Origin: Oikopleura dioica
Lineage: Eukaryota; Animalia; Chordata
Length of the DNA stretch: 64,000 nt
Direction: 5' to 3'
NCBI GenBank assembly: GCA_907165135.1
Contig: OU015567.1
Span: forward strand, 3,348,001-3,412,000
In this document: positions 2,236-20,661 of the stretch, in pieces
Position numbering within the stretch: position 1 is the first letter of the stretch
How the letters are laid out: each line of letters starts with the position of its first letter
The notes under the pieces: model-generated
The model's input: the letters and a program-made list of their open reading frames with translations, nothing else
Told to the model about the DNA's origin: nothing
Database searches by the model: none
Made by a program: the position numbers and the translations under genes

Positions 2236-3558
2236 ATGAAATTTCTACTTTATATTTTTCTTATTGAGGCTTCTTTGCTTGAACACTGCCCGTAAGAATA
2301 ATCAAAATTTTTGAAAAATAAGACTTTTTGCTTCAGAGACGAGAATTTACATGATATTTGTTCGACGCAGTGCAGAAGGGACTACAATTCCTGCTTGTTA
2401 GATTGCGCCTCGACTAACTGCTTTGACAATTGCATTACTGAGTATGCTATTTGTAATGATTTTTGCCCATGTGGAGAAAAATGCCCGGTAGGTTGTGAAA
2501 ATTGTAGTCATCCGCTCTGCCTGACGCCGGTAAAATCCGAATTCTTTCTTTTTTTGCAAAGAATTGTTCAGAACAGGACATTTATTCTGAACTTCATGAA
2601 TAAAATGAGCCAGAGCTACATTCTCTCCGGTGATGGGCTTAAGAAATCGACAGTTGAAATCAGTCCTCCAGGAGATTACACAATCTATTCGCAATATGCA
2701 ATGGTTAAAGATCAGCTGCACATCTTTGGAGGAACTCGAGAGCGAATGAAAAACGTTTGTTTCAACAAAAACCTCTCCATAAAACATTTTTCAGATCATG
2801 AAGCTTGTTGGATGCTCATTTATTGAGCTGTCTGCCCAACTGATCAACAAAATTTCAACAGAAAGTGCGGCCATTTCAGTTAATTCAAACAACATAGCTC
2901 TGATTTGCTTTCCCTCAGGAGAATTCCCTGCTCAAAAGTGCGAAATTTTCAATGGCGAAAACTCAACTTTGACATTTTCCACAGCCTATTCCCACCACAA
3001 AGGCAAACTTGGCGAGTACGAGGGGCGGCCGACAACTGTTGGATCGGTTGACTACCTCTATGGCAATCGAATAACAGAGACGCTAGGAGAAAACGGCTGG
3101 ATTCGTCTTGCAGACCATCCACGGTAAATTCTTACTTTAGTTCTTGCTGATCATTTTTGAGAAACCTCCATTCCCATGACCTCGTTGGCCTCGATTGTGG
3201 AGCGCTACTGTCGATTGGGGAATTGAAAGAAGAGGCACGAGCGAAAAAGAATACATTTCAGACATCTGGAAGCTTGAGAAAAACGTTTGGTCCCTAATTG
3301 GTCAACTGCTGAAGGTAGATTTACATCAAGATTCATCGCTATTTGGTTTTCTAGTCTTTCGGGGAAGGAAGTTCGATCAAAATTGGAACGTCTATTTATG
3401 TCTTTCCAGGGTTTTCCGAAGAGTTGGCTGTTCAAAGAATAGATTTAAGCCCAGCTAAAGAAGACTTGACAGTATCAATTATAATAATTGGCGAACATCA
3501 AGAAATCGTTTACACACCTGTTTTGTTCCATGCTATAGCGGACTACTGTATCTATTAA
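2236..3558 (+). CDS. Secreted protein with Cys-rich N-terminal repeat and kelch-like beta-propeller segments (multi-exon)
   Basis: Signal-like MKFLLYIFLIEASLL; Cys array CSTQCRRDYNSCLLDCASTNCFDNCITEYAICNDFCPCGEKCPVGCENCSHPLC; kelch-like QLHIFGG, PTTVGS, GWIRLADHP; last exon ends PVLFHAIADYCIY*; short GT-AG introns link the ORF pieces. Confidence 0.65.
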
Positions 3559-3603
3559 AAAATAAGCTCCAATACTGTTTGTCTCCAATGAAGCCGATCC
3601 CAA

Positions 3604-3675
3604 GCGTTGGTGGTGTAATGGTCAGCATTGATGCCTTCCAAGCATTATATCCGGGTTCGATTCCCGGCCATCGCA
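3604..3675 (+). tRNA. tRNA-Gly (anticodon TCC)
   Basis: GCGTTGGTGGTGTAATGGTCAGCATTGATGCCTTCCAAGCATTATATCCGGGTTCGATTCCCGGCCATCGCA: cloverleaf, anticodon loop CTTCCAA, GGTTCGATTCC T-loop/B box, downstream oligo-T terminator. Confidence 0.93.
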
Positions 3676-6139
3676 AATTTTTTTCCCCTCTGATTCCTTA
3701 GAAAGGATGAAACCGGCTTTTCGATAATTTCTTTTCAAACAAAACCCGTTCTAGCGTTAGTTTTTATCTATGTCGATGCAAATCCGTCTCCCGGAGCCGC
3801 TCAATTTGACATTTTCTTATATAAATTGAACCAGCAGATCAGACGAGCTTTCAACTAAGAGGCTTTTCAAAAGCTTAAAAAAAAGACGCCTTTCAGCAAG
3901 AAAATAAAAAATAATCGGATTTGCCGAATACTTCCGGTTTCAAAAAACTTCAGGAGAAAAATTGATGACGTATGATTCTAGTGAGATGCCATCTGAAGCT
4001 TGCTTATTTGATTTGTAAAATATGACAACGCTAGAAAAATGATGGTTCTTTTCGACGAAAAATTTTCAGAAGAAATTCATGGTTTTTCATTATTTCAAAA
4101 ATTCAAGTCGAAAAACGTGAACAAAAATGTCCAGCAATAATTGATTTAATTTTATAAATAAATCGAGTTTTTCAGCAAGAGAAACGTTTCCCAATTATGA
4201 AAAATCCATTAAAAATCTCCACCCTTATTTAACCTTAAATACAAAACATTTCGTAAAAATAAAAAATACCATGTCGATCATCAGCACGATTCTGAATTCA
4301 GGAAACGAATCGGAAAGAATCTGTTGTGTAAATGCCGCAACTAAAAAGGGGCCAGCTTCTAACACTTGTTGAAAAACAATGTCACGAGCCGAGTCTAAGC
4401 AGTGATTACCTGGGTGTTTGATTTTCCCAACAAATCGCGTAATGCCGAAAATGTATTTATATCGATGACAGAAAAAATACTGAAACATCGATTTCATGTT
4501 TTCACTTTTTTTATTTTTTACGGAAATAATTCCCAGAAAAGCCGGGAAAAAGCGCGATTCTGAAGCCTTCAATTAAGCCCTTTTTCTTCTTCGTCGGTAA
4601 TTCAGACTTCCTCCTTCGCTTTTATTTTTCCCCTTGATCTTCCTTTTTCAACGAAACCGGGTGTTTTACGATCTTGTCAATCACCATCATTTCCCGGGCG
4701 TGGCGAAAAAGGGTTGAGTTTCCGCCGGAAAGTCAAATTCACCCCTTTTTCGCGTAAAAGAAAAGAGTTTGTACTCCTGATTTTTTAGAATTTATAAGCG
4801 GAGAGGTTTAAATATCACCCGGATCAGATGGCAAGAAATTATAATTTTCAAGCTATCAAGATCGAGAAAAAACCTTTAAAAATCCTTTTAGGGTATTTCA
4901 TATTGAAAACCATACAAACTGTTTATCACTCGTTAAAAAACTTAAGGATATACAGGGTCTTAGAGGTAAGATTGCTAAGTGAAGGTTTTTTCGGGTTTTT
5001 AATTGGGGTAAACCCTTAATTTTTTTTCAGAATAAAGCTTATGTCTAGGTTTCCCTCACCACGTTTGTTGCATTAGTAATTTACCACGGCATACAAAAAG
5101 TCCATCCCCGTGGCCTTCCTTCTTCCTCGCACGCGCGTATTTTTCCTCCTAGATGGCGCTGAAGTGGAGCGCGCCACCGCCGAGCGCCGGAGCAAAAATT
5201 ACTTCCCGGCCAACTCAACTCATCCCATTGTCGACTTTCTACTTTTCTTAAAAGCTCAAAGAAGAAGCACCGCCTTTTTTGACGAAAAACAACGAAGCGC
5301 TCGGACAATTTACAGTTACTGAGAAATTGGACGCTTTTAAACTTGAAAAAAAAGTCAAATTTTGAGCAACGAAAAAAAGAAAACGAAAAAAGGAGTCAAA
5401 ACGTCCCTGAAAAAGAAAGAGAAACAAAAAAACTGCATATAAGGTAAAAGAATAACAGGAAACCATAAATTTCTTCAATTTTTGGACAATAAGTAGAAAA
5501 AGGTTCATCTGAATTTTGAATACCGAAAATAATCGCTTTCGAATCACCGCAAAACCAATAAAACAAAATCTTGATTCTTAGAGGTAACAAACTGTATTCG
5601 CCATATTGAATATTCAAAATTGTTATAACAATTTTTTTTCCCCTTCTTATTAATTTTTGGCAAGAAGTCCCTTTTTCGGTATCCCTTATTCTAGTCTTTG
5701 AACATTTTGTGACTTCAAATCGATGATTTTCTTTATTTCATTTTCTTTATTCAGAAAAAAAAATAAAATTTTAAATATTTTTCTGATGAATGAAGTAAAA
5801 ATAACTACCATGGGCGACAGATGAGAGTTCACGGTAAATATTGAGCTGTTCGGCAAAATATTTAAACGTGAGTTAGAGAGATTGTTATGTTTCCTCTCTT
5901 ATCGTCGGAGGAACAAATTTGTCCGATTTCGCGATTTCGCGTTTCGCGGACTTGATGCGCTGGAGTGCCTCATTTTTATGCAAATGGCGACCGTTGACTG
6001 TCTCTTGAAAAGCGAAGGCTGACGCTGATTTTCATAATCAAAGGACCCACTTTTCGCACTCGTCATTTTTTTAAATCAATTTTATCTGCTAATTCGACAA
6101 TTATTATGTCATAAAATCAGTGGTCAGAGATCTGAATGA

Positions 6140-6196
6140 AAAACCTGAGTCAGGGTTCTGATATAGAATGTACCCTGACTCAGGTTTCTACACAGG
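6140..6196. mobile_element. Collapsed MITE remnant (outer TIR of the family also at 50910 and 56072)
   Basis: AAAACCTGAGTCAGGG ... CCCTGACTCAGGTTT-CTACACAGG inverted repeat matching the termini of the other copies. Confidence 0.6.
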
Positions 6197-6446: not shown

Positions 6447-8760
6447 ATGCGACTTTCTGGAATTCTAGCGTCGCTGATTGGATTGGGCGAAGCTCAAGGC
6501 ATCGTTACGGATCAACCCGCCGATTCTGGCATAATCTTCGATCAAGCGGGGGAGACGCATCAGATCACTTACCTGGACAGGGAATTCCAGGATTCCGATG
6601 GTGAGTTTCAATTTTTTCGCGCGGAAATGAGCGTTTTTTCAGTCAATGTCGAGTGCACCAGTACAAACATGTGCATCAAGCTCTCAAAACAATTCCTCAT
6701 CGACGAAAAAATCACCGACAAATTCGAAGGCGTCCACCTTAAAAACTGCGATCAGGAACGGTATCTCCTTAATCTCAAAAGTTCTTCTCGGTTTTCCGAA
6801 AAATGATTCAACAAAATTTTTGATTTCTTTAAATTGATATTTTCTTTATCATTTTTGTTGAACAGCGTGATCGAGCTGGATCAGAGGAACAACACTCGTG
6901 ACTATTGATAAGAAAAAGTACTCATCCTGATAAGGGGATCGGGCAGATATTCTAAACTGAGCGGGTTTGGACACAACTCAGCGTCCGCTTTGAATGTCAC
7001 AAGCTGACTGTTCGCGCAGATTACCGAACCCTTCTTTCTTTTCCGTAGTTTTTTCCCTTCGCGAAATCAATTTTCACCGGATTTTGATTCTGATCTTGAC
7101 TTATACAAAAGAAGTTATGGAGAGACCAGCTAACAGGGCGTGCGCAACGAAACAGAGCAGTTCATCACTTTATGCACCGATCTGGGATTTAACACCTGTG
7201 GCACAGAAATGCACATGAATTCTACGCACGTTTCTTATCTCAACAGACTTTTTACTACCAATCGAGAATCGTCCACTACCGACAAGGTAATTTGTTAAAA
7301 AATTGAACTTAATTTTTGAATTAAGAATTTGAATTAATTTTTTTCTTTAATTTTTCCATATTTTTTTTAATAATTTTTTTAACAATTATTTTTATAATTT
7401 TTTTTCAATAATTTTAAATTTTTCAAATAATTTTCAGGGATCTGTGGTGCTCTCTTCGATCAACGAGTTCATCGTCCCCTGGCATTGCGTCTACCCGCTG
7501 GACTACCTTGTCGGCTTATCCAATGGAGCTGGCAACGATTACGGCTTTTTCATCCCAAAGATCTACGACGTCGTAAAAGTAACGCTTCTCATGCAGCCTG
7601 GCGAGGGAAAGGGTGACTTTCCAGTAACGATGATGTTGTATACTGACAACACTTACGCCGAGGTCTACAACGAGCCCCCAACTTTGAATGTTACTGACAG
7701 GTGAGAAATTAATTTGGACATGCGGCATGTCCCTAATTATAGGGCATGTCACATGCCCTATAATTAGGGATTTCTCGAGAAAGAGTCTCCATCAATAGAA
7801 CTGCTAAAACATTAATAAAAAGAGCCACGTTTTAGTTGAACCCTTTTGAGCTCATCCCCTAATCTCTAATGCCTTCTTATTCTACCACCTAATAGTCAGC
7901 TTGCCGCGGTTCTTCTCATTTTTGGACTTTCTGAGTCCCCAATTATCTGAAAATTGAATTGAAGGCAAAAATTGTCGACGAATATTTTAGGCTCTACGTG
8001 CAAACTCAACTGCTCAAGGGACCGGAAGACTCAGTTATTCAGACGAAGGAGTGCTGGGCGACAGCGTCGGCGGATATTGATGATACGACCAGATATCAGC
8101 TGATTCAAGACTAGTGAGTTGGAATTGGAGATAATTTTGGCTCTCTTATTTGAAGAATCAGCATTTACTAAAACCCTTTTCTAGTTGCGTCGATGATGAA
8201 GCGGATCAACGAGCGGAAGTGGATCTCCTAACGAATGGTGTTTCTCAAACTAGCCGCTGGGAATCCAACGTGTTCAAGTTTGTCGATGAGCCGAACGTGC
8301 ACCTCCATTGCCGGGTCCGAATCTGTTTCACAACCGACGGAAACACCTGCGACCAATTTGATTGCACAACAAGCAGAAAGCGAAGGGAAGCGGGACTTCC
8401 TGTCGATGAGGTAAAAAACTAAAGGGAGAAATTGAAGCAAAACTAAATTGAAGGATGCGATCGTTTCAATCGGACCATTGAAGCTCGGAAACAAAGTGCT
8501 GCTCGTGGACGGACAAGAGACGGAAGAAATCGAAGTTTTCGAAGAGCTGGAAATCATTGAAGCATCAACTTACATCCCGAAATACTTCATTTACATCGTT
8601 GTTGGATGCTTAGTCGTTGTTGTTGGCTTGATTTCGGCCATCATGATCCTCGTCTACAAGAAAAAGAAGGCCAGCGCTAAGGAAAGGGTTGAAAAAAGAA
8701 GAAGATTCGAGAGAGTCTTTTCTAAAACCATCTCCCTCGAAATAATCTGGTATCTTTTTC
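6447..8760 (+). CDS. ZP (zona pellucida)-domain transmembrane protein; 3' end approximate
   Basis: Signal peptide MRLSGILASLIGLGEAQ; ZP-N pieces VECTSTNMCIKL and CGTEMHMNSTHVSYLN; ZP-C FPVTMMLYTD...LYVQTQL...ECWAT...CVDD...FKFVDEPNVHLHCRVRIC; furin-type RKRR; TM YFIYIVVGCLVVVVGLISAIMILVY followed by a basic KKKK tail. Confidence 0.88.
7731..7769. repeat. Perfect 19-bp inverted repeat (1-nt spacer) in ZP gene intron
   Basis: CCCTAATTATAGGGCATGT-C-ACATGCCCTATAATTAGGG. Confidence 0.9.
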
Positions 8761-9343: not shown

Positions 9344-10831
9344 ATGAAGATGACAGAAAAAGCAGTAATAATCTTTCTCCTTTCAATTTTATTCTGCACG
9401 ATTTATTTTGGTGATTTTTCGAGCGTGAAAGAATACGCAGGAATAAAAACGGAGAGACTTTTGAAAGAAAAAATATCGAGTGAAGAAAATGATAGAATTC
9501 AAGATATTCGAAATAGAGAAGTATTTCTAAGAAGAAAGCTGATTTACAACCGAGCATGTTCTGAATTGGGCTCTAGAATTTTTTTCGATTTCAATTTTTT
9601 AACTTTTCTTTTCTCGAAATCAGATCCTAAAGCTCGTAAAAGCTCTTCCTCTTATTCAAGAAACTCTCAAATCCGAACAATTTCCTGGGTTGGGAAAGCT
9701 TCTCCGGCTTCATAAACAAATCCACAACCTAAACGCCCCTCTTCCCAAATTCAACGATAGCTGCATCGCAAATAATGTTATAAAATCAAGCGTGTTCAAC
9801 TTGACAGAATCGATGGACCTGATGATTTGCCTCCCGCCAAAAAGCGGAACAACAAATTGGCAGAAGGGCCTCGATGTTCATTATTTAAAATTGACAAAAG
9901 GATCAAAAGCAGCAAAGGAGTACTCCAAAAGCTCGAGAATCATGAAGCTGGGAATAGTATCTACCATATAATGCCAAGAGTAAATGCCCCAAAACTTCAC
10001 CAATATACGAAAGAAAGAAGAAGTCTCGAAGAAATTCTTACCGCGTCAAATCGAGTCGCAAATACAAGGGAACGGTTCCTCCTCTTTTTTACCAATTTTG
10101 CCTAATTATGGAAGAAACCGCTCAAAGAAACCCATTTGCCCGAGTCTACTCCGCATATCACGACAAAATGCGAGCCATGCCAAAATGGATCAAAGCTTTT
10201 CAAAAATACTTCGTTGCAATTCAGCCTTTCCAGCCCTATTTCGGCACGATCCCAGAGGGAATGAGAACTTCTTTCGAATCGTTTCTCGAATTCATCGCAA
10301 CAAATCGAGGTGAAGCAGGGCACAATGCTCACTGGAGATCGATTTTCTCTCTTTGCTCTGCTTGTGCAATGGATTTTAATCACATCACGCATTTGGAAAA
10401 CAGCAAAGAGGAAATTCCGTCCCTTCTGAGGGAGCTTGGACTTTATGGGAAAATTCATATCGATGGGCAATACACTTGGGATGAGAAAACGCACGGAAAA
10501 TTGAAGAATCGAAGAGACACAGAAAGCACAGAAAGACCACCAGATGAACTTCACTGGCAAAATGTCCCGAGAAAGACGGCAATTGAGATTTATAGACATT
10601 ATTATTTGGATTTCGTGCTTTTTGGCTACTCGACCAAAGATGTCATGAAGTAAGTTTTCCGATGAAAAATGGTAAAATAATATATTTTACAGGTACATAA
10701 GTGCATCAAGAAAAGGGATGCCAAGGCCACCAAGATCAATGCGACAATTATCGAGGCAAAATTTGAGAAGAATGAAAGAAGTGTTTTTAGAAACAGAAAC
10801 TGATTTTATCTGTAATGAAACAGTTTATTGA
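9344..10831 (+). CDS. Carbohydrate sulfotransferase (Sulfotransfer_2 / CHST8-14-like), type II membrane
   Basis: N-terminal TM; 5'-PSB motif CLPPKSGTTNW; 3'-PB motif RNPFARVYSAY; HWRSIFSLCSACAMDFNHI; YYLDFVLFGY; last exon 10693-10831 ends CNETVY*. Confidence 0.9.
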
Positions 10832-11535
10832 AAATTGTGTCTGTTTAATTTATTATTTTTTTCCTTATTATTGTATATTTAGGGATATCGCACAAATTTT
10901 CAAGTACCCGAAAAAAGGGTGCAAACCGATTTTTAGATGGATGATCTAGTAGAACTTAAGACGAGGATTTCAATGCTACCAAAATCATTTCATAATAATG
11001 AGTCATTTTCGTAAAAATTGCGTTCAAAAAGCTCATTTTTCGGATCAGTACGAGGACTGTTTTGTCGTTAATGATTTTATATTTTTTCCTTATAGATATT
11101 GGGCTGAGAAACCCAAATCTGTAAAAAAAAATTCACTGACGCACCTCGCGTTTTGAAAATATGAATTTTTAAAGTTTTCCGAGGTGAATTCTGAGCGGCG
11201 TTGCGTCATTTTGGAGGCGGCCGCACGGGGGCGCGCCCGCTGCATGGCCAAGCTAGCCCGACTCACATTCTTTTCTCTTTACTATTTTATGCTATTTTTC
11301 ATAAAATTGCATATTTTTGGACCTTTTGAGGTGTTTTTTTTATGAATAAGAATATTTAATTGATATCTAGAATATTTGATACAGAAAATTAGTTTTTTTT
11401 TATTATAAATTATAGTTAAATTAAGTAGTTTTTTTCAATTTTTCACACGAAAACTTAATCTGCATTGTCCGTCTCTAGGAGCAAGCCATGCTTGAGTAAA
11501 TATGAAGCTTTTTTTGTTGACGAGAGTTGAAAAAA

Positions 11536-11983
11536 CTGCCAAAGTTCGATCCAACCGCCATTGTCGAGGTCTACCTCCGAGTTGTTGGCGAAGTCGGTGC
11601 CACTTCCGCCCTTGATGGCCAAAACCGGCGGTGCCCGTTTAAAGCAAAGACCTTGACGGGATCCGCTTAGGAGGAGCTGGTAGCTTCACTGAATTAGTTC
11701 GAACGATTCTAGGTCTCCGTCTCCTCGATCATCATCAAGGCCCTCCGAGACAGAAAGAAGGTCAAGAACAGACTGTTCCCATTCCTCTTCCTTCCCCAAC
11801 CGCAACTGCTCAGTCAAGCACATCGGTAGCATCACCTTAGACGACAACATTAACTGCGCTCGAATCATGCGATCACGATCTGGCGCCCGGGATCTTTCCG
11901 GCACCATCCGAGAAATCCTCCGCACTGCCCAGTCCGTTGGATACACCGTCGACGGCTCCGACCACCACGATCTCATCAAATAG
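11536..11983 (+). pseudogene. RPL12: 60S ribosomal protein L12 (uL11) degenerate fragment inside the transposon
   Basis: LPKFDPTAIVEVYLRVVGEVGATSAL ... [14 protein letters not shown]|[11 protein letters not shown]...[33 protein letters not shown]; no initiator ATG, deletions, frame disruption, premature TAG at 11981; 43-nt intron-like insert 11771-11813. Confidence 0.9.
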
Positions 11984-12044
11984 ATAAAGGCCGAAAAAAA
12001 TTGATTTTCCTCTTTAATATATACTGTAGCTATATATGTAAATT

Positions 12045-12890
12045 GAGACGGAGCAACGACGGCCCGAAGGGCCGGCAAGCCCCTTAAATTCAAATAAAAG
12101 GAACGGGGCTGAGAATGCCCGGAAAGCCGTCAAGCCCCTTAAATTCAAAAATAAAGGAACGGGGCTGAGACGGCCCGAAGGGCAAGCAAGCCCCTCAAAT
12201 TCAAAAATCAAGAAACAGGGCTGAGACGGCCCGTAGGGCCGGCAAGTCCCTTAAATTTAAAAATCAAGAAAAAGGGCTGAGACGGCCCGAAGGGCCGGCA
12301 AGCCCCCTCAAATTAAAAATCAGGAAACAGGGCTGAAACGGCCCGAAGGGCCGGCAAGCTCCTTAAATAAGAAAATCAAGAAAAAGGGCTGAGAGGGACT
12401 GAAGGGCGGGCAAGCCCCTTAAATAAAAAAATAAAGAAACTGGGCTGAGAGCAAGCCCATTAAAGAAAAAAATCAAAAAACAGGGCTGAGACGGCCCGTA
12501 GGGCCGGCAAGCCCCTTAAATAAAAAATCAAGAAACAGGGCTGAGACGGACCGAAGGGCAAGCAAGCCCTCAAATTAAAAATCAAGAAACAGGGCTGAGA
12601 CGGCCCGTAGGGCCGTCAAGCCCTTAAATAAATAATAAAGAAACAGGGCTAAGACGGCCCGAAGGGCGGGCAAGCCCCTTAAATAAAAAATCAGGATAAA
12701 AGGCTGAGACGGCCCGAAGGGCAAGCAAGCCCTTAAATTCAAAAATCAAAAACAGGGCTAAGACGGCCCGAAGGGCGGCAAGCCCTCAAATTAAAAATCA
12801 AGAAACAGGGCTGAGACGGCCCGTAGGGCCGTCAAGCCTCTTAAATTCAAAAATTAAGAAACAGGGCTGAGACGGCCCGTAGACCCGTTA
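12045..12890 (+). repeat. Diverged tandem array (~14-15 units of ~56-60 bp), forward orientation
   Basis: Recurrent GGGCTGAGACGGCCCG(A/T)AGGGCCGGCAAGCCCCTTAAA...AAATCAAGAAACA units. Confidence 0.9.
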
Positions 12891-12907
12891 AAATGGAAAA
12901 TCAATCG

Positions 12908-15639
12908 TTTGGGCCGTCTGAGCTCCATTCCTTAATTTTTGAATTTAAGGGGCTTGACGGATCTTTGGGCCGTCTCAGCTTTTTTTCTTGATTTTTTTAT
13001 TTAAGGGGCTTACCCGCATTTCGGGCCGTCTCAGCCCTCTTTCTCGATTTTTTTATTTAAGGGGCTTGCCGGCCCTTCGGGCCGTTTCAGCCCTGTTCCT
13101 TGATTTTAAATTTTAACGGCTTGCCGGCCCTTCGGGCCGTTTCAGCCCTGTTCCTTGATTTTAAATTTTAACGGGCTTGACGGCCCTTCGGGCCGTTTCA
13201 GCCCTGTTCCTTGATTTTAAATTTTAACGGGCTTGACGGCCCTTCGGGCCGTTTCAGCCCTGTTCCTTGATTTTAAATTTTAACGGGCTTGACGGCCCTT
13301 CGGGCCGTTTCAGCCCTGTTCCTTGATTTTAAATTTCGGGCTTGACGGCCCTTCGGGCCGTTTCAGCCCTGTTCCTTGATTTTAAATTTTAACGGGCTTG
13401 ACGGCCCTTCGGGCCGTTTCAGCCCTGTTCCTTGATTTTAAATTTTAACGGGCTTGACGGCCCTTCGGGCCGTTTCAGCCCTGTTCCTTGATTTTAAATT
13501 TTAACGCGCTTGACGGCCCTTCGGGCCGTTTCAGCCCTGTTCCTTGATTTTAAATTTTAACGGGCTTGACGGCCCTTCGGGCCGTTTCAGCCCTGTTCCT
13601 TGATTTTTAATTTTAACGGGCTTGACGGCCCTTCGGGCCGTTTCAGCCCTGTTCCTTGATTTTAAATTTTAACGGGCTTGACGGCCCTTCGGGCCGTTTC
13701 AGCCCTGTTCCTTGATTTTAAATTTTAACGGGCTTGACGGCCCTTCGGGCCGTTTCAGCCCTGTTCCTTGATTTTAAATTTTAACGGGCTTGACGGCCCT
13801 TCGGGCCGTTTCAGCCCTGTTCCTTGATTTTAAATTTTAACGGGCTTGACGGCCCTTCGGGCCGTTTCAGCCCTGTTCCTTGATTTTAAATTTTAACGGG
13901 CTTGACGGCCCTTCGGGCCGTTTCAGCCCTGTTCCTTGATTTTAAATTTTAACGGGCTTGACGGCCCTTCGGGCCGTTTCAGCCCTGTTCCTTGATTTTA
14001 AATTTTAACGGGCTTGACGGCCCTTCGGGCCGTTTCAGCCCTGTTCCTTGATTTTAAATTTTAACGGGCTTGACGGCCCTTCGGGCCGTTTCAGCCCTGT
14101 TCCTTGATTTTAAATTTTAACGGGCTTGACGGCCCTTCGGGCCGTTTCAGCCCTGTTCCTTGATTTTAAATTTTAACGGGCTTGACGGCCCTTCGGGCCG
14201 TTTCAGCCCTGTTCCTTGATTTTAAATTTTAACGGGCTTGACGGCCCTTCGGGCCGTTTCAGCCCTGTTCCTTGATTTTAAATTTTAACGGGCTTGACGG
14301 CCCTTCGGGCCGTTTCAGCCCTGTTCCTTGATTTTAAATTTTAACGGGCTTGACGGCCCTTCGGGCCGTTTCAGCCCTGTTCCTTGATTTTAAATTTAAC
14401 GGGCTTGACGGCCCTTCGGGCCGTTTCAGCCCTGTTCCTTGATTTTAAATTTTAACGGGCTTGACGGCCCTTCGGGCCGTTTCAGCCCTGTTCCTTGATT
14501 TTAAATTTAACGGGCTTGACGGCCCTTCGGGCCGTTTCAGCCCTGTTCCTTGATTTTAAATTTTAACGGGCTTGACGGCCCTTCGGGCCGTTTCAGCCCT
14601 GTTCCTTGATTTTAAATTTTAACGGGCTTGACGGCCCTTCGGGCCGTTTCAGCCCTGTTCCTTGATTTTAAATTTTAACGGGCTTGACGGCCCTTCGGGC
14701 CGTTTCAGCCCTGTTCCTTGATTTTAAATTTTAACGGGCTTGACGGCCCTTCGGGCCGTTTCAGCCCTGTTCCTTGATTTTAAATTTTAACGGGCTTGAC
14801 GGCCCTTCGGGCCGTTTCAGCCCTGTTCCTTGATTTTAAATTTTAACGGGCTTGACGGCCCTTCGGGCCGTTTCAGCCCTGTTCCTTGATTTTAAATTTT
14901 AACGGGCTTGACGGCCCTTCGGGCCGTTTCAGCCCTGTTCCTTGATTTTAAATTTTAACGGGCTTGACGGCCCTTCGGGCCGTTTCAGCCCTGTTCCTTG
15001 ATTTTAAATTTTAACGGGCTTGACGGCCCTTCGGGCCGTTTCAGCCCTGTTCCTTGATTTTAAATTTTAACGGGCTTGACGGCCCTTCGGGCCGTTTCAG
15101 CCCTGTTCCTTGATTTTAAATTTTAACGGGCTTGACGGCCCTTCGGGCCGTTTCAGCCCTGTTCCTTGATTTTAAATTTTAACGGGCTTGACGGCCCTTC
15201 GGGCCGTTTCAGCCCTGTTCCTTGATTTTAAATTTTAACGGGCTTGACGGCCCTTCGGGCCGTTTCAGCCCTGTTCCTTGATTTTAAATTTTAACGGGCT
15301 TGACGGCCCTTCGGGCCGTTTCAGCCCTGTTCCTTGATTTTAAATTTTAACGGGCTTGACGGCCCTTCGGGCCGTTTCAGCCCTGTTCCTTGATTTTAAA
15401 TTTTAACGGGCTTGACGGCCCTTCGGGCCGTTTCAGCCCTGTTCCTTGATTTTAAATTTTAACGGGCTTGACGGCCCTTCGGGCCGTTTCAGCCCTGTTC
15501 CTTGATTTTAAATTTTAACGGGCTTGACGGCCCTTCGGGCCGTTTCAGCCCTGTTCCTTGATTTTAAATTTTAACGGGCTTGACGGCCCTTCGGGCCGTT
15601 TCAGCCCTGTTCCTTGATTTTAAATTTAACGGGCTTGAC
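12908..15639 (-). repeat. Same satellite in reverse orientation; ~45 near-identical 56-bp units from ~13075
   Basis: Unit CCCTTCGGGCCGTTTCAGCCCTGTTCCTTGATTTTAAATTTTAACGGGCTTGACGG repeats with period 56; only occasional indels or substitutions. Confidence 0.97.
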
Positions 15640-15846
15640 AAAGGCTGAGAAGTCTGAGTTGATCAATGTCAGTTCTGTCCCCAACCCCACCCGCACCCAT
15701 GGTTTTAAAAATTCATATTACATTTGCTTTTTTCTTGTTTATGGTTTTTATTCATCCGCCCCTCTAGAAGTATAAATTCACAATTTTGCGCTTGCCATTT
15801 GACTTCGACTTTGGAAGGGTTCATTCCTTTTAGATTCGAAAATTTA

Positions 15847-16095
15847 GAAGCTACAGCTCAGCTAAGCTCAGCAATATTGAGGGTTCAGCTCACTTCAGCT
15901 CAGCTCAGCTCAATTTTTCCGAAGAAAGCTCGCTCAGCGCAGCTCAAAAATTTTCAAATATGCCCCAGCTCAGCTTAATTTTTTTGAAAAAGTCTAGCTC
16001 AGCTCAGCGCAGCTCAACTTAGTTATTTTTAAAAAGGGCCCGCTCAGCTTAGCTCAGCTCAATCTCGACCTCACCTCTGCTAGCTCAGCTCAGAA
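15847..16095 (+). repeat. Clustered (CAGCT/AGCTC)n pentamer repeats separated by A/T tracts
   Basis: Multiple GCTCAGCTCAGC runs at ~15860, 15890, 15930, 15965, 15995, 16045, 16080. Confidence 0.8.
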
Positions 16096-17612
16096 AAAAT
16101 TTTCAAAGATTTGCAACCCTGCGTGAAGCTGTTTTCCTTTTCTTCGTTGAACAGGTCTGATTCAAGTTCGGCGATGCGCGAACATGTCGCGGAACTTGTC
16201 CATCTTTTCGTATTGATCTTCGAATTTGAGCTTGAGCTCTTCATATTTGAACTACATCTGATCAGATTGCTTGTTCGAGCTGCTGCCCCTAAGAGTCTCC
16301 TCGAGAGTTGCCGACTTAAATGCTTCAGGCATTCAATTTCTTCTTCTTGGCGTTTTTGAAGAGATACAAATTCGGCCAACGTTTAGACTGGACCGATTCT
16401 TTTTCCTTGGTAACCGAGTCCATCTTCATTTTCATCTGTTTGGACATTTGTTTTTGCAGGAACGCAGGGAGGTCTTCCGGAGGAAGCGTGTCAATCTTCG
16501 ACTGAAAGTCGATCACGATTGGGCACAACAAGTTCTCCCTTCGTCTTTGACTGCAAAAACAATTTGGTCAGGATCTTTAGCGCAATTTCTCGTTTCTGCG
16601 CGCATTTTCGCTTCTCCGATTCCACAACAGAAAAGAACTTAAAATATGCCCTTTTCTCATGCTGATTCCTTGAGAGAATAATTTTCGAGAAATAGCAAGC
16701 AAAAATAACGCCTCTTTCACCTCTATTTCTCCTCTCAGACAGATGCTTCTGAAATACCCGACAAAATAGGCTCGTAATGGCCAGAGACGACTTTACATGC
16801 AACCTTCAGAAACTCTTTACAACTTCATATCTCATAATTTTTGAATAGATGGTTAATAAAGTGGTCTTTAAGGATTTTTTTGATCCAAGAATCATCGAAT
16901 TTTATCGTTCCAGTCCCGAGAAATCATCATTTTAGTGAAACTCTCCGAGCCTTTTTGTGAACAAGGCTTTCAGGAGTGTCAACCAATCAGCGCGCAGCTG
17001 AAAACAGAAAAGCGCCACAAGCGTCGAGAGAGAAAAAAACAACTCCCGGAGGTTCATTTCTAGCGATTGGAAGATGCGTCAGTGAAAATTTTTGCAGATT
17101 TGGAATTCTCGTTCAAATTTATGTTAGTCTAGCATTTAAAATTTCTAAGATCTTGAAAGCTTCACCCAGATCGAAAAAATCACACTTTGACGCATCATTT
17201 TTACGAAAATGACTAATAGTTATGAAAAGATTTCTGCACCACTAGAATCGCCGTCAAAAGTTCTACTAGTCCATCAGTCTTAAAATTACTCTAGACCCTT
17301 TTTTCGGGTACCTAAAAATTTGTGCGATATCCCTATGTATATTAGTTTCTGCCAAATAAAGATTTTAACTTTAAATCATGAGTATCTCTATGACAGAAAC
17401 TGATAATAAGTTTGCACAGAGAAGCTGATCTTTGTCAATTCTAAAACTGAATAAACGGGCGTCGCTCGCCAGGCGGAAATGTGTTTGATCAGTTCACAAT
17501 TGTCAGTGCTCATTCACTTTCTCCATTGAATTGTTCTACTTTCGCCATAAAATCAGAACTAAAAGAAATCAAGGAAGAGAAAAGCAGCGAAAACAGAAGA
17601 GAATTTAAAAAA

Positions 17613-18633: not shown

Positions 18634-20661
18634 CTAGTAGCAAATTTCGTTCAAAAACGATTGGTTTTTGTAAACATCACTGTGGGATAGTTTTGAGCGG
18701 GCGAGATTTATTGCGTCTTCGGAAAGGACGTTTTTGTCTTCTGGGCCGGCGAAGACGTATTTTAGGCATTCTTCTGGGTCGTAGCCAAGAGCGGCCAGAT
18801 CTGAAATAAAATAGATTGGTTTCAAACGAGGGCTCTTATTGGGGTTTTTGACCAAATATATATCATTATATCTGCTTCCCCAACCCTAACCTGAACTTTC
18901 TAGTCAATAGGTACGAGAAAAACTTACCCATAAAATAAATCATGTAAATCTTCTTGGCGACATCTCTTGGAACATCTTTCCAGAATTCACTTGGATGCGT
19001 GTGAGCTAAGGGGCTTGTTTTGTATTGATCTTCCATAACCGGTTTGATTGGTGCGATCTTTTCCCAAGTGTAGTTGTATTCGTTGTGCACTTCTTCGAGG
19101 TGGAGAATCATGTCGTAGTTGAAGTGACAGTAGCTGCACTCCCAGTACACCCTTAATCAAATTATAGAGCGTAAAAATGAGGTAGAACTCACGTTCTCCA
19201 ATGCCGATTATTGCAAAATTCACTTGGATTCGCCGCTCTGTAAGAAACAAAAGCTTCAAAAGAGCACGAATATTTCTCATCATGTTCGTATCCTTCTTCA
19301 AATGTCTCTATCGAAGGCAAAAAGAACCCTTGACGGCGTGCGTTGATGTTGACATTGAATTTATCTCGCCAGGCGGAGACAAGTCGCTGGAAGGGGTTTC
19401 GGGTGTTGACGATTTTGATGTCAGACATTGCGTTGATTCGTTTGGCATCGCCGTAGTCGGAAGGATCAGCCCGAGGAATTGTTCCTTTTCCGTGATCTCC
19501 ACTCAGAGAGGCTGAATAAATTAATTATTTTTACACTCAATATATGCGGGTTTCATCAATCGCAAACTTTACGTGGGTAATTCTCGTCAAAATAGCTAGA
19601 CTCTAAAAATATATGATGAGGACTTATAAAATAAATTTATGGTTTGTTGCCATATACCTACCTACATTTTGAGGTGCTCTCTAGAAGATATTCGAGACAA
19701 TAAATAAAAGATGGAAATACTTTCGATTTTCAGAAATAGCCTTTTAGCGAAATGAAAAGGGAAAAATATTTAATCCAAAAACATAAGCCGGATATATTTT
19801 TAGGAGTTTTTGATCAGCAACCTCCATTCTTCTTTCATTTAATTACCTAGAGCATTTTGCCAATTCGTCGTTCCACATTTAGGAGGCAAACATATCGTCA
19901 AATTCAAATCTCTTTGGAAGAAAATATCAATCTTCGACTTCGATCTTCCCTTGATGAATCTTGCTTTATTGTACTTTTTCGAAAAACTTGGGGAGTTGCA
20001 CTGAATCGGCTGACGATCTTCTTGAGGAGCAGGGCCTTCGAGGTCGTAAATTTGGCGATGGAGGGCGAGAAGGCCGTCGAAATCTTCTTGATCGACGAGG
20101 TTTTGGATTTTTCTTCGGACACCGCAGGTGCGTTTCATGTATTTTACTCGGTTCTTCATGACTGTATTTATTTTCTGCCACTCTAAACGATTCACATAAG
20201 AAGACATCATAACTTTATCAATAAATCTATGCGTTTAACATTTTATTTTACTTTGTTAGCGACTCAATCTCTAAATAAATATATAATATATTATTCTATA
20301 AGCATATTGAGAACTTGACGCTTAAAGCAGAAGATAAAAAAATTCAAACAATACCCTCATCATGTTCAAGAAACGACGGTCCTAAATTCAGCGCGTCGGA
20401 AAACTTTTCTTTCATCTTCAAAAAATCTTCATATTCATCCTCGTACTCTTCGCTTTCATCGTCATCTTCATAAATATAATCGTCAATTTTCTCTTCAATC
20501 ATTTTCTGCTGATACTCTTTATAATAACTCAAAATATTCGACGAATCCACCACAAGTCCGTCATTCTCCAAATTCGCTCCAAACTCAATCGCCAACGAAA
20601 AAATCACAATGAAAAGAATAAAAAATGCGCAAACAGCTCTCAAGGTACCATAGTTTTGCAT
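18634..20661 (-). CDS. Carbohydrate sulfotransferase paralog (Sulfotransfer_2 / CHST-like)
   Basis: N-terminal TM (AVCAFFILFIVIFSLAI), acidic stem, CLPPKCGTTNW, NTRNPFQRLVSAWRDKF, NRHWR..YWECSYCHFNYDMI, IYMIYFM|DLAALGY. Confidence 0.9.

Follow-up and report, generated by a model that had tools for sequence, protein, structure and literature searches.

A probable Pack-type terminal inverted repeat transposon family carrying host gene pieces and satellite DNA in Oikopleura dioica

The stretch of Oikopleura dioica DNA analyzed here (the window, 64,000 nucleotides of contig OU015567.1) belongs to the short arm of chromosome 2, and corresponds to C5:3348001-3412000 in the scaffold labels C1-C5 of the OKI2018_I69 assembly, which was the assembly searched (64,281,565 bases in 19 pieces). 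The genome of O. dioica is, to our knowledge, the smallest among free-living chordates. The window contains a 6456-bp element, W, that is quite probably one copy of a small, recently active, non-autonomous family of Pack-type transposons with terminal inverted repeats (TIRs), lacking a transposase and filled with a patchwork of host DNA. Six other full copies, L016-L021, are found in the assembly. The copies have TIRs and a target site duplication (TSD), no transposase, and an interior derived from host genes that has moved together with the ends, which are the features of a multi-copy Pack-type element. The positions of all features are given in Table 1.

The family census was run in two ways, with a 271-nt end query and with a degenerate TIR pattern, and both return the same set of seven full copies (3.65-8.35 kb, on four scaffolds) and one eroded solo end. 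The degenerate pattern finds 14 paired ends and one solo end, and its reversed control has 0 matches. A search for further copies of the ends had been proposed in the original prediction, and has now yielded the six additional copies, with different TSDs and with the cargo travelling along, so the outcome named there as refuting the prediction did not come about. Every full copy has a near-identical TIR of 41-46 nt, and all seven are flanked by an 8-bp TSD (six perfect, one at 7/8). The TSD sequences are TGTATATT, AGAATACG/AGAATAAG, AATATCTC, GTCATAAA, AATATAAC, CCTATAAC and ACTATATG. A4 and T5 are present in 7/7 of these, T3 in 5/7 and A6 in 6/7, giving a palindromic target consensus nnTATAnn (n=7 sites); the invariant A-T would occur by chance in seven sites with a probability of about 5e-8 (at ~30% A and ~30% T).

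L017 and L018 have 0 substitutions over 3.66 kb and 15 small gaps. The two lie at a distance of 42 kb; their flanks are unrelated and their TSDs differ. Because no substitution separates them, the family moved very recently. From end to end, W and L016 share 95-96% identity, sit on separate scaffolds and have different TSDs, and the remaining copies have 84-94% identity in the shared ends. The mobility of the family is deduced from the seven distinct TSDs and the zero-substitution pair, and not from an empty allele.

The ends of W are as first described, with an exact 8-bp TSD (TGTATATT on both sides), 39/41 identical termini and about 260 bp of patchy homology. Over the terminal 41 nt (TAGGGATATCGCACAAATTTT...), 39 positions agree with the reverse complement of the opposite end, and the patchy inverted homology, with the ends in register, extends to ~265 bp at 72% identity over 267 bp, with the shared blocks CTAGTAGAACTT, GTCATTTTCGTAAAAAT and CCAAATCTG..TTCACTGACGCA. 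The perfect repeat at the ends is 46 nt. Within the window, the terminal 20-mer is confined to these two sites, against 0 expected; since it was never seen in 100 shuffles, a chance inverted repeat is ruled out. The terminal 300 nt contain no enriched short subterminal motif for transposase binding, and no Rfam families or tRNAs are found inside the element.

Table 1. Features of the window copy W and its surroundings (window positions), and locations of the full copies of the family
Feature	Position	Strand	Remark
Last long exon, carbohydrate sulfotransferase gene (context)	10108-10650	+	PF03567 Sulfotransfer_2, E 1.3e-18, to profile end
Left TSD TGTATATT	10872-10879	.	identical to 17336-17343
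Left TIR, 41 nt, starts TAGGGATATCGC	10880-10920	+	39/41 vs right end; kept at 14/14 ends of 7 copies
Left subterminal region, patchy inverted homology to right end	10880-11144	+	72% over 267 nt to 17072-17335
Left family backbone, non-coding	11145-11447	+	all copies to 11327 at 96%; L019/L021 to ~11446
Unnamed PAR-scaffold host gene piece, 49 nt	11448-11496	-	88% to C1:9751683-9751731
RPL12 (uL11) fragment, 509 nt	11523-12031	+	parent C2:420546-421266
Degenerate 56-bp satellite array, ~15 units, 76% matches, 822 bp	12058-12879	-	inverted vs main array
Main 56-bp hairpin-type satellite array, 48.6 units, 98% matches, 2712 bp	12928-15639	+	
Nested/truncated multi-copy repeat, 274 nt, AGCTCAGC-rich	15849-16122	-	at least 30 dispersed copies, 72-81% identity
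Coiled-coil gene 5'-end piece, 78-bp internal deletion	16122-16504	-	98% and 90% to C2:5135926-5136390
UVSSA piece	16502-16607	-	87% to C2:12754801-12754906
ULK4-like kinase piece	16618-16767	+	80% to C1:10015633-10015772
Right family backbone, non-coding	16768-17071	+	L017, L018, L019, L021 at 81-86%
Right subterminal region and right TIR (17295-17335)	17072-17335	-	inverted homology to left end
Right TSD TGTATATT	17336-17343	.	identical to 10872-10879
AATAAA, first canonical poly(A) signal after sulfotransferase stop (context)	17355-17360	+	11 nt past right TSD
Copy W	window 10880-17335 on C5		6456 bp
Copy L016	C3		6585 bp
Copies L017 and L018	C1		3657 and 3652 bp
Copy L019	C5		8345 bp
Copy L020	C4		7636 bp
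Copy L021	C5		6518 bp

Nothing in the interior of W is left over once family backbone, satellite, pieces of host genes and a nested repeat have been assigned, which bears out the earlier observation that the element has no transposase. The cargo comprises pieces of at least five host genes, namely RPL12, a coiled-coil gene, UVSSA, a ULK4-like kinase gene and an unnamed gene. The capture of host genes by a Pack-MULE-like element in a chordate had been proposed from one gene fragment; the proposal holds for at least five host genes, and further pieces are present in a sister copy. The pieces lie in both orientations, and the unlinked parent genes, which have long open frames, are on C1 (the pseudoautosomal region, PAR) and C2; the parents of the RPL12, UVSSA, ULK4-like and coiled-coil pieces are intact. 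Going by their sizes, scaffold C2 (12.96 Mb) would correspond to the X-specific region and C3 (2.92 Mb) to the Y-specific one.

The RPL12 fragment retains the start of exon 1, lacks 157 bp within that exon, and continues through the intron and exon 2 just into the 3' untranslated region (UTR). It is 94% identical to the intact gene in exon 1 and 78% in the intron and exon 2. The parent has the domains PF03946 and PF00298, and the fragment still matches PF00298 at E 3.5e-7. It is not a working gene, because it lacks an ATG, and the kept intron shows that it was captured at the DNA level and not by retroposition. A short RPL12 fragment is also found outside the family, at L050:1512-1809 (C4:3267011-3267308), with a duplicate at C4:3212130-3212427. 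This fragment and the element-borne ones share the upstream sequence AGAGTGGAAATAACTGCCAAAG, which is absent from the real RPL12 gene. The fragment outside the family may have been left by the same capture event, or may derive from a second RPL12 source.

The coiled-coil parent locus has a 575-amino acid (aa) open frame on the opposite strand, and the piece with the identical 78-bp deletion is present in five copies (W, L016, L017, L018 and L019). The UVSSA parent is an open frame with the PF20867 UVSSA_N domain (E 2.4e-13), and the ULK4-like parent has a 1008-aa frame with Pkinase and HEAT_ULK4 domains; the UVSSA and ULK4 pieces are present in six copies. The unnamed piece comes from within an 84-aa open stretch that has no Pfam match, and is also found in L016 and L020. 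The cargo of L020 includes a 1.4-kb PP2C piece (88% identity, PF00481 at E 1.7e-17), a less-deleted RPL12 piece and pieces of at least two further loci, and family-wide there are at least nine parent loci. The same cargo joints recur in 3 to 6 copies with different TSDs. Since the joints are common across copies, the mosaic was built in ancestral members of the family and then spread as they transposed, and one lineage had part of it replaced.

The nested repeat in W ends in ...CCCTG at position 16122, a CAGGG-type terminus on the minus strand, where it abuts the coiled-coil piece. It may be a truncated miniature inverted-repeat transposable element (MITE) of the hAT type. Among the genome-wide profile matches, none to the transposase domains PF05699 or PF10551 falls in any copy of the family, and scans of the open stretches of the copies find only host-gene domains or translated satellite. 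Long open reading frames in L019 were rejected as genes, as they are translations of a 57-bp satellite, a relative of the 56-bp one, and their Pfam matches (Fst toxin and others) are low-complexity noise.

Three internal joints show microhomology of 2-3 bp when read against both parents: GA at the 78-bp deletion, CTG (a 3-nt overlap) between the coiled-coil and UVSSA pieces, and TTG at the RPL12 deletion. The UVSSA and ULK4 pieces are separated by a 10-nt filler. The short overlaps at the joints suggest template switching or microhomology-mediated joining, and template switching has been proposed as the route for animal Pack-TIRs (PMC8277862). According to PMC11067885, which cites Deng et al. 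2018 on this point, O. dioica has lost canonical nonhomologous end joining (NHEJ) and repairs induced breaks by microhomology-mediated end joining. It is possible that a repair background without canonical NHEJ is linked to frequent capture.

The structure could in principle be something other than a mobile unit, made of end-elements that bracket host DNA, of in-place gap filling or of a segmental duplication, as most animal Pack-TIRs are single-copy and formed in place (PMC8277862). Such an origin is hardly credible here, since the whole 6.5-kb structure recurs on another scaffold at 95-96% identity with a different TSD, the same cargo joints (including the 78-bp deletion) are common to five to six copies, and the flanks of the copies are unrelated. 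A segmental duplication is ruled out by the unrelated flanks and different TSDs of L017 and L018. The family is also not a MITE, as its seven copies of 3.65-8.35 kb contrast with the length below ~800 bp and the high copy number of MITEs, nor a Foldback element, as the ends are unique sequence and the satellite arrays keep a distance of 1.2 kb from the left terminus and 1.7 kb from the right one. The superfamily of the mobile Pack-type family is most likely hAT, given the 8-bp TSD in all copies, the TAGGG terminus and the CAGGG ends of the true hATs in this genome. TAGGG fits the hAT terminal motif (T/C)A(A/G)NG; Ac starts with CAGGGATG and the family of W with TAGGGATA. An 8-bp TSD is a hallmark of hAT elements (PMC3942097). 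Two hAT families were found for comparison. hAT-A is ~6.07 kb long with a 23-nt TIR CAGGGTGTCAAATCGCGGGGGAT and the TSD GTGTTAGC (L032:1443-7515; C5:13843992-13850064), and has a multi-exon transposase with PF05699 in the last exon (E 2.9e-9) and an internal repeat with a 30-nt period. hAT-B has a 44-nt TIR CAGGGCTGCCGAATTCGGAGC..., the TSD TAGTAGAC and a 1580-bp copy with a PF05699 remnant. CAGGG ends, 8-bp TSDs and ~45-nt repeats thus co-occur in O. dioica hATs.

Several observations weigh against the picture of a mobile hAT-type family. No empty site was found when the assembly was searched with the reconstructed junction (...CCTTATTATTGTATATT joined straight to AGTTTCTGCC...) at up to 3 mismatches, in data hardly able to show one; two metagenome scans, with the TIR pattern and with a junction 22-mer, likewise gave no match, which says nothing against mobility. 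The autonomous copy with a hAT transposase that the original prediction proposed to look for does not appear, as the TIR pattern search finds no autonomous element with these ends in the 64.3-Mb assembly. PF05699 matches only in hAT-A and hAT-B, apart from one weak match on C3, and both have different ends, which beyond YAGGG are no closer to those of the family than shuffles (p 0.27-0.53). hAT-A and hAT-B are accordingly rejected as the autonomous partner, and no source of transposase is apparent for a family that moved very recently, which is the main weakness of this reading. The target consensus nnTATAnn, from seven sites, fits neither the Ac-type pattern nTnnnnAn nor the Buster-type nnnTAnnn. 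The latter is described in PMC3499496. The TIRs of 41-46 nt and the ~265-nt homology exceed the hAT norm of 10-25 bp (PMC3942097) and are more Mutator-like; the ends were originally called unusually long, which is true against this norm but not within the genome, where hAT-B has its 44-nt repeat. The microhomology is seen at three joints only, which is few. The initial label of hAT-like thus keeps the 8-bp TSD and the TAGGG terminus in its favor, but is not proven, with no autonomous partner and a target pattern that does not fit. PF14372, PF14291, PF04937, PF21787 and PF12762 have no matches in the genome, and most are also silent in control genomes, so these are weak blanks.

The main rival is a non-autonomous Mutator-like element (MULE), that is, a strict Pack-MULE moved by a MULE transposase of O. 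dioica, and it is rather unlikely. PF10551 matches at several loci lie within open frames of 541-660 aa (C1:5821086, C5:10116858, C2:8822519 and C2:2874461), so that intact Mutator transposases are potentially present in the genome, and animal MULEs have TSDs of 8-9 bp, TIRs mostly >100 bp and non-autonomous derivatives with host gene fragments (PMC5225508). The long patchy ends of W, reaching ~265 nt, would suit such an element. The same source gives TSDs of 8-10 bp and TIRs usually >100 bp as MULE features, to which the family compares with 8 bp and a 46-nt perfect repeat. The TSD is exactly 8 bp in 7/7 copies, with no 9-bp case; none of the 13 PF10551 places is returned by the assembly searches with the TIR pattern and the 271-nt end; the strict target preference of the family differs from Muta1, which has no apparent preference (PMC5225508); and the TAGGG terminus is hAT-like. 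A weaker PF10551 match is located at C5:12174814, 17 kb from L021. The missing partner, and a target consensus that misfits both hAT patterns considered, would also be accommodated by another superfamily with an 8-bp TSD (Zisupton, Novosib, P or Merlin) whose transposase is absent or unrecognized. This is improbable, as the terminal YAGGG motif is common to the proven hATs of the genome, and no P-type (PF21787) or Merlin-type (PF12762) domain occurs in it, on profiles that matched little or nothing in the controls. The probability left over from these superfamily estimates is uncertainty about the whole picture.

A more speculative extension, for which the odds are rather long, is that this is an orphan Pack-type family that still jumps without any autonomous element sharing its TIRs, cross-mobilized by a dissimilar transposase or by one kept by the host. 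If true, an animal without canonical NHEJ would capture host DNA into transposons unusually often, and Oikopleura would become an animal model for the origin of Pack elements.

In the proposed mechanism for the hAT-type family, a DDE transposase supplied in trans would bind the long ends, and the bound element would be excised and reinserted through 8-bp staggered cuts. Gene pieces and satellite may enter when the template is switched while the element is being repaired or replicated, and the mosaic would go on transposing after capture. W would have landed between a sulfotransferase stop codon and its AATAAA, probably shifting the transcript end.

The family resembles the animal multi-copy Pack-TIRs Pack-hAT-N8_XT of Xenopus tropicalis and Ssk-FB4 of Drosophila (Tan et al. 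2021, PMC8277862) in its TIR shell without a transposase, its host sequence from distant loci, its several copies with distinct TSDs and its microhomology at joints. The kind is therefore already known in animals and in chordates, including the multi-copy frog Pack-hAT. Unlike Pack-hAT-N8_XT, which has a single 291-bp 5' UTR piece in three copies, the O. dioica elements are mosaics of at least five gene pieces and kilobases of satellite, and the family has seven copies, two of which have no substitution differences. Multi-copy cases are rare in animals, with four families among 281 unique Pack-TIRs in 100 genomes and one fly family, and the 64-Mb O. dioica genome is not mentioned in that study (PMC8277862). 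As in plant Pack-MULEs and the gene-carrying non-autonomous Muta of Aedes aegypti (PMC5861414, PMC5225508), the inverted ends are long, the interior is heterogeneous, several gene fragments lie in both orientations and introns are retained, and an 8-bp TSD is possible in those elements too. The differences from them are that no MULE transposase shares the ends, that the TSDs are never other than 8 bp and always have AT at the center, and that the terminus is hAT-like. With the canonical hATs (Ac/Ds, hobo, Hermes, Buster; PMC3942097, PMC3499496) the family shares the 8-bp TSD and a terminus that fits the motif, but it differs in its TIR of 41-46 nt with ~265-nt homology, its nnTATAnn target and the lack of a known autonomous relative.

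Multi-copy gene-capturing TIR transposons are common in plants. A young family with readable joints offers a tractable case for the capture route, the supplier of the transposase and the possible rewiring of the 3' ends of tightly packed genes. For annotation, the element accounts for a spurious 'RPL12-like' fragment and for some of the unclassified repeats, which are 44% of all Okinawan repeats (PMC8008620).

W lies between two convergent Sulfotransfer_2 paralogues, at window positions 9690-10831 (+) and 18634-20661 (-), and takes up the greater part of the gap that separates their 3' ends. In a spliced model of the first gene, a GTAAGT...CAG intron at 10650-10692 (43 nt) is removed and the TGA stop codon falls at 10829-10831, which leaves 48 nt up to the element. 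The unspliced frame stops at 10651-10653, 226 nt upstream of the element, so the distance of ~50 bp between stop codon and insertion given in the original prediction agrees with the spliced model but not with the unspliced frame. Neither AATAAA nor ATTAAA occurs in the stretch from the stop to the insertion or in the first 1.2 kb of W. Because the first AATAAA lies beyond W, the insertion probably puts 6.46 kb between the coding region and its poly(A) signal, and W probably changes where the sulfotransferase transcript ends, as judged from the positions of these signals.

The eroded solo end (L022:1890-6138; C3:263900-268148) is an old right end with 73-84% identity, its terminus mutated to AATGG, and is broken into three pieces by later insertions.

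hAT-A has PF05699 at seven places, including C1:636914, 641782, 732634 and 737494 and C4:380299 and 393172; the fetched copies on C1 are ~98% identical to the C5 copy and those on C4 ~91%. Two hAT-A copies lie in inverted orientation 13 kb apart, at L033:1094-7031 (C4:376493-382430) and L034:2963-8901 (C4:391232-397170). Their flanks are reverse complements of each other and neither copy has matching 8-bp flanks, which looks as if one insertion had been duplicated in inverted orientation, or as if the arrangement were composite. hAT-B is found at L037:681-1500 and 3916-5495 (C3:1855680-1860494, on the putative Y-specific scaffold), in a region that forms a ~4-kb tandem duplication beside inverted blocks of an 18-nt GGGTTTAAATGTC repeat.

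The two inverted 56-bp satellite arrays together make up 55% of W. The same satellite is dispersed outside the family, where at least 20 other loci have arrays of it, 1-3 kb long and 92-96% identical to the window unit, and it may itself be acquired cargo. Examples are at C4:7428122-7431170, C2:2459747-2461949, C1:8496701-8498309 and C5:7037751-7039845. The copies differ in array length, with ~49 units in W against 70 in L021, and the homogeneity within each array is 98%, so the arrays keep changing after insertion. The interior of L019 (L019:2667-6789; C5:7838562-7842684) is a large palindrome, in which inverted 128-bp repeats (2667-3029 and 6462-6789) enclose inverted arrays of the 57-bp satellite (3288-4887 and 5355-6169).

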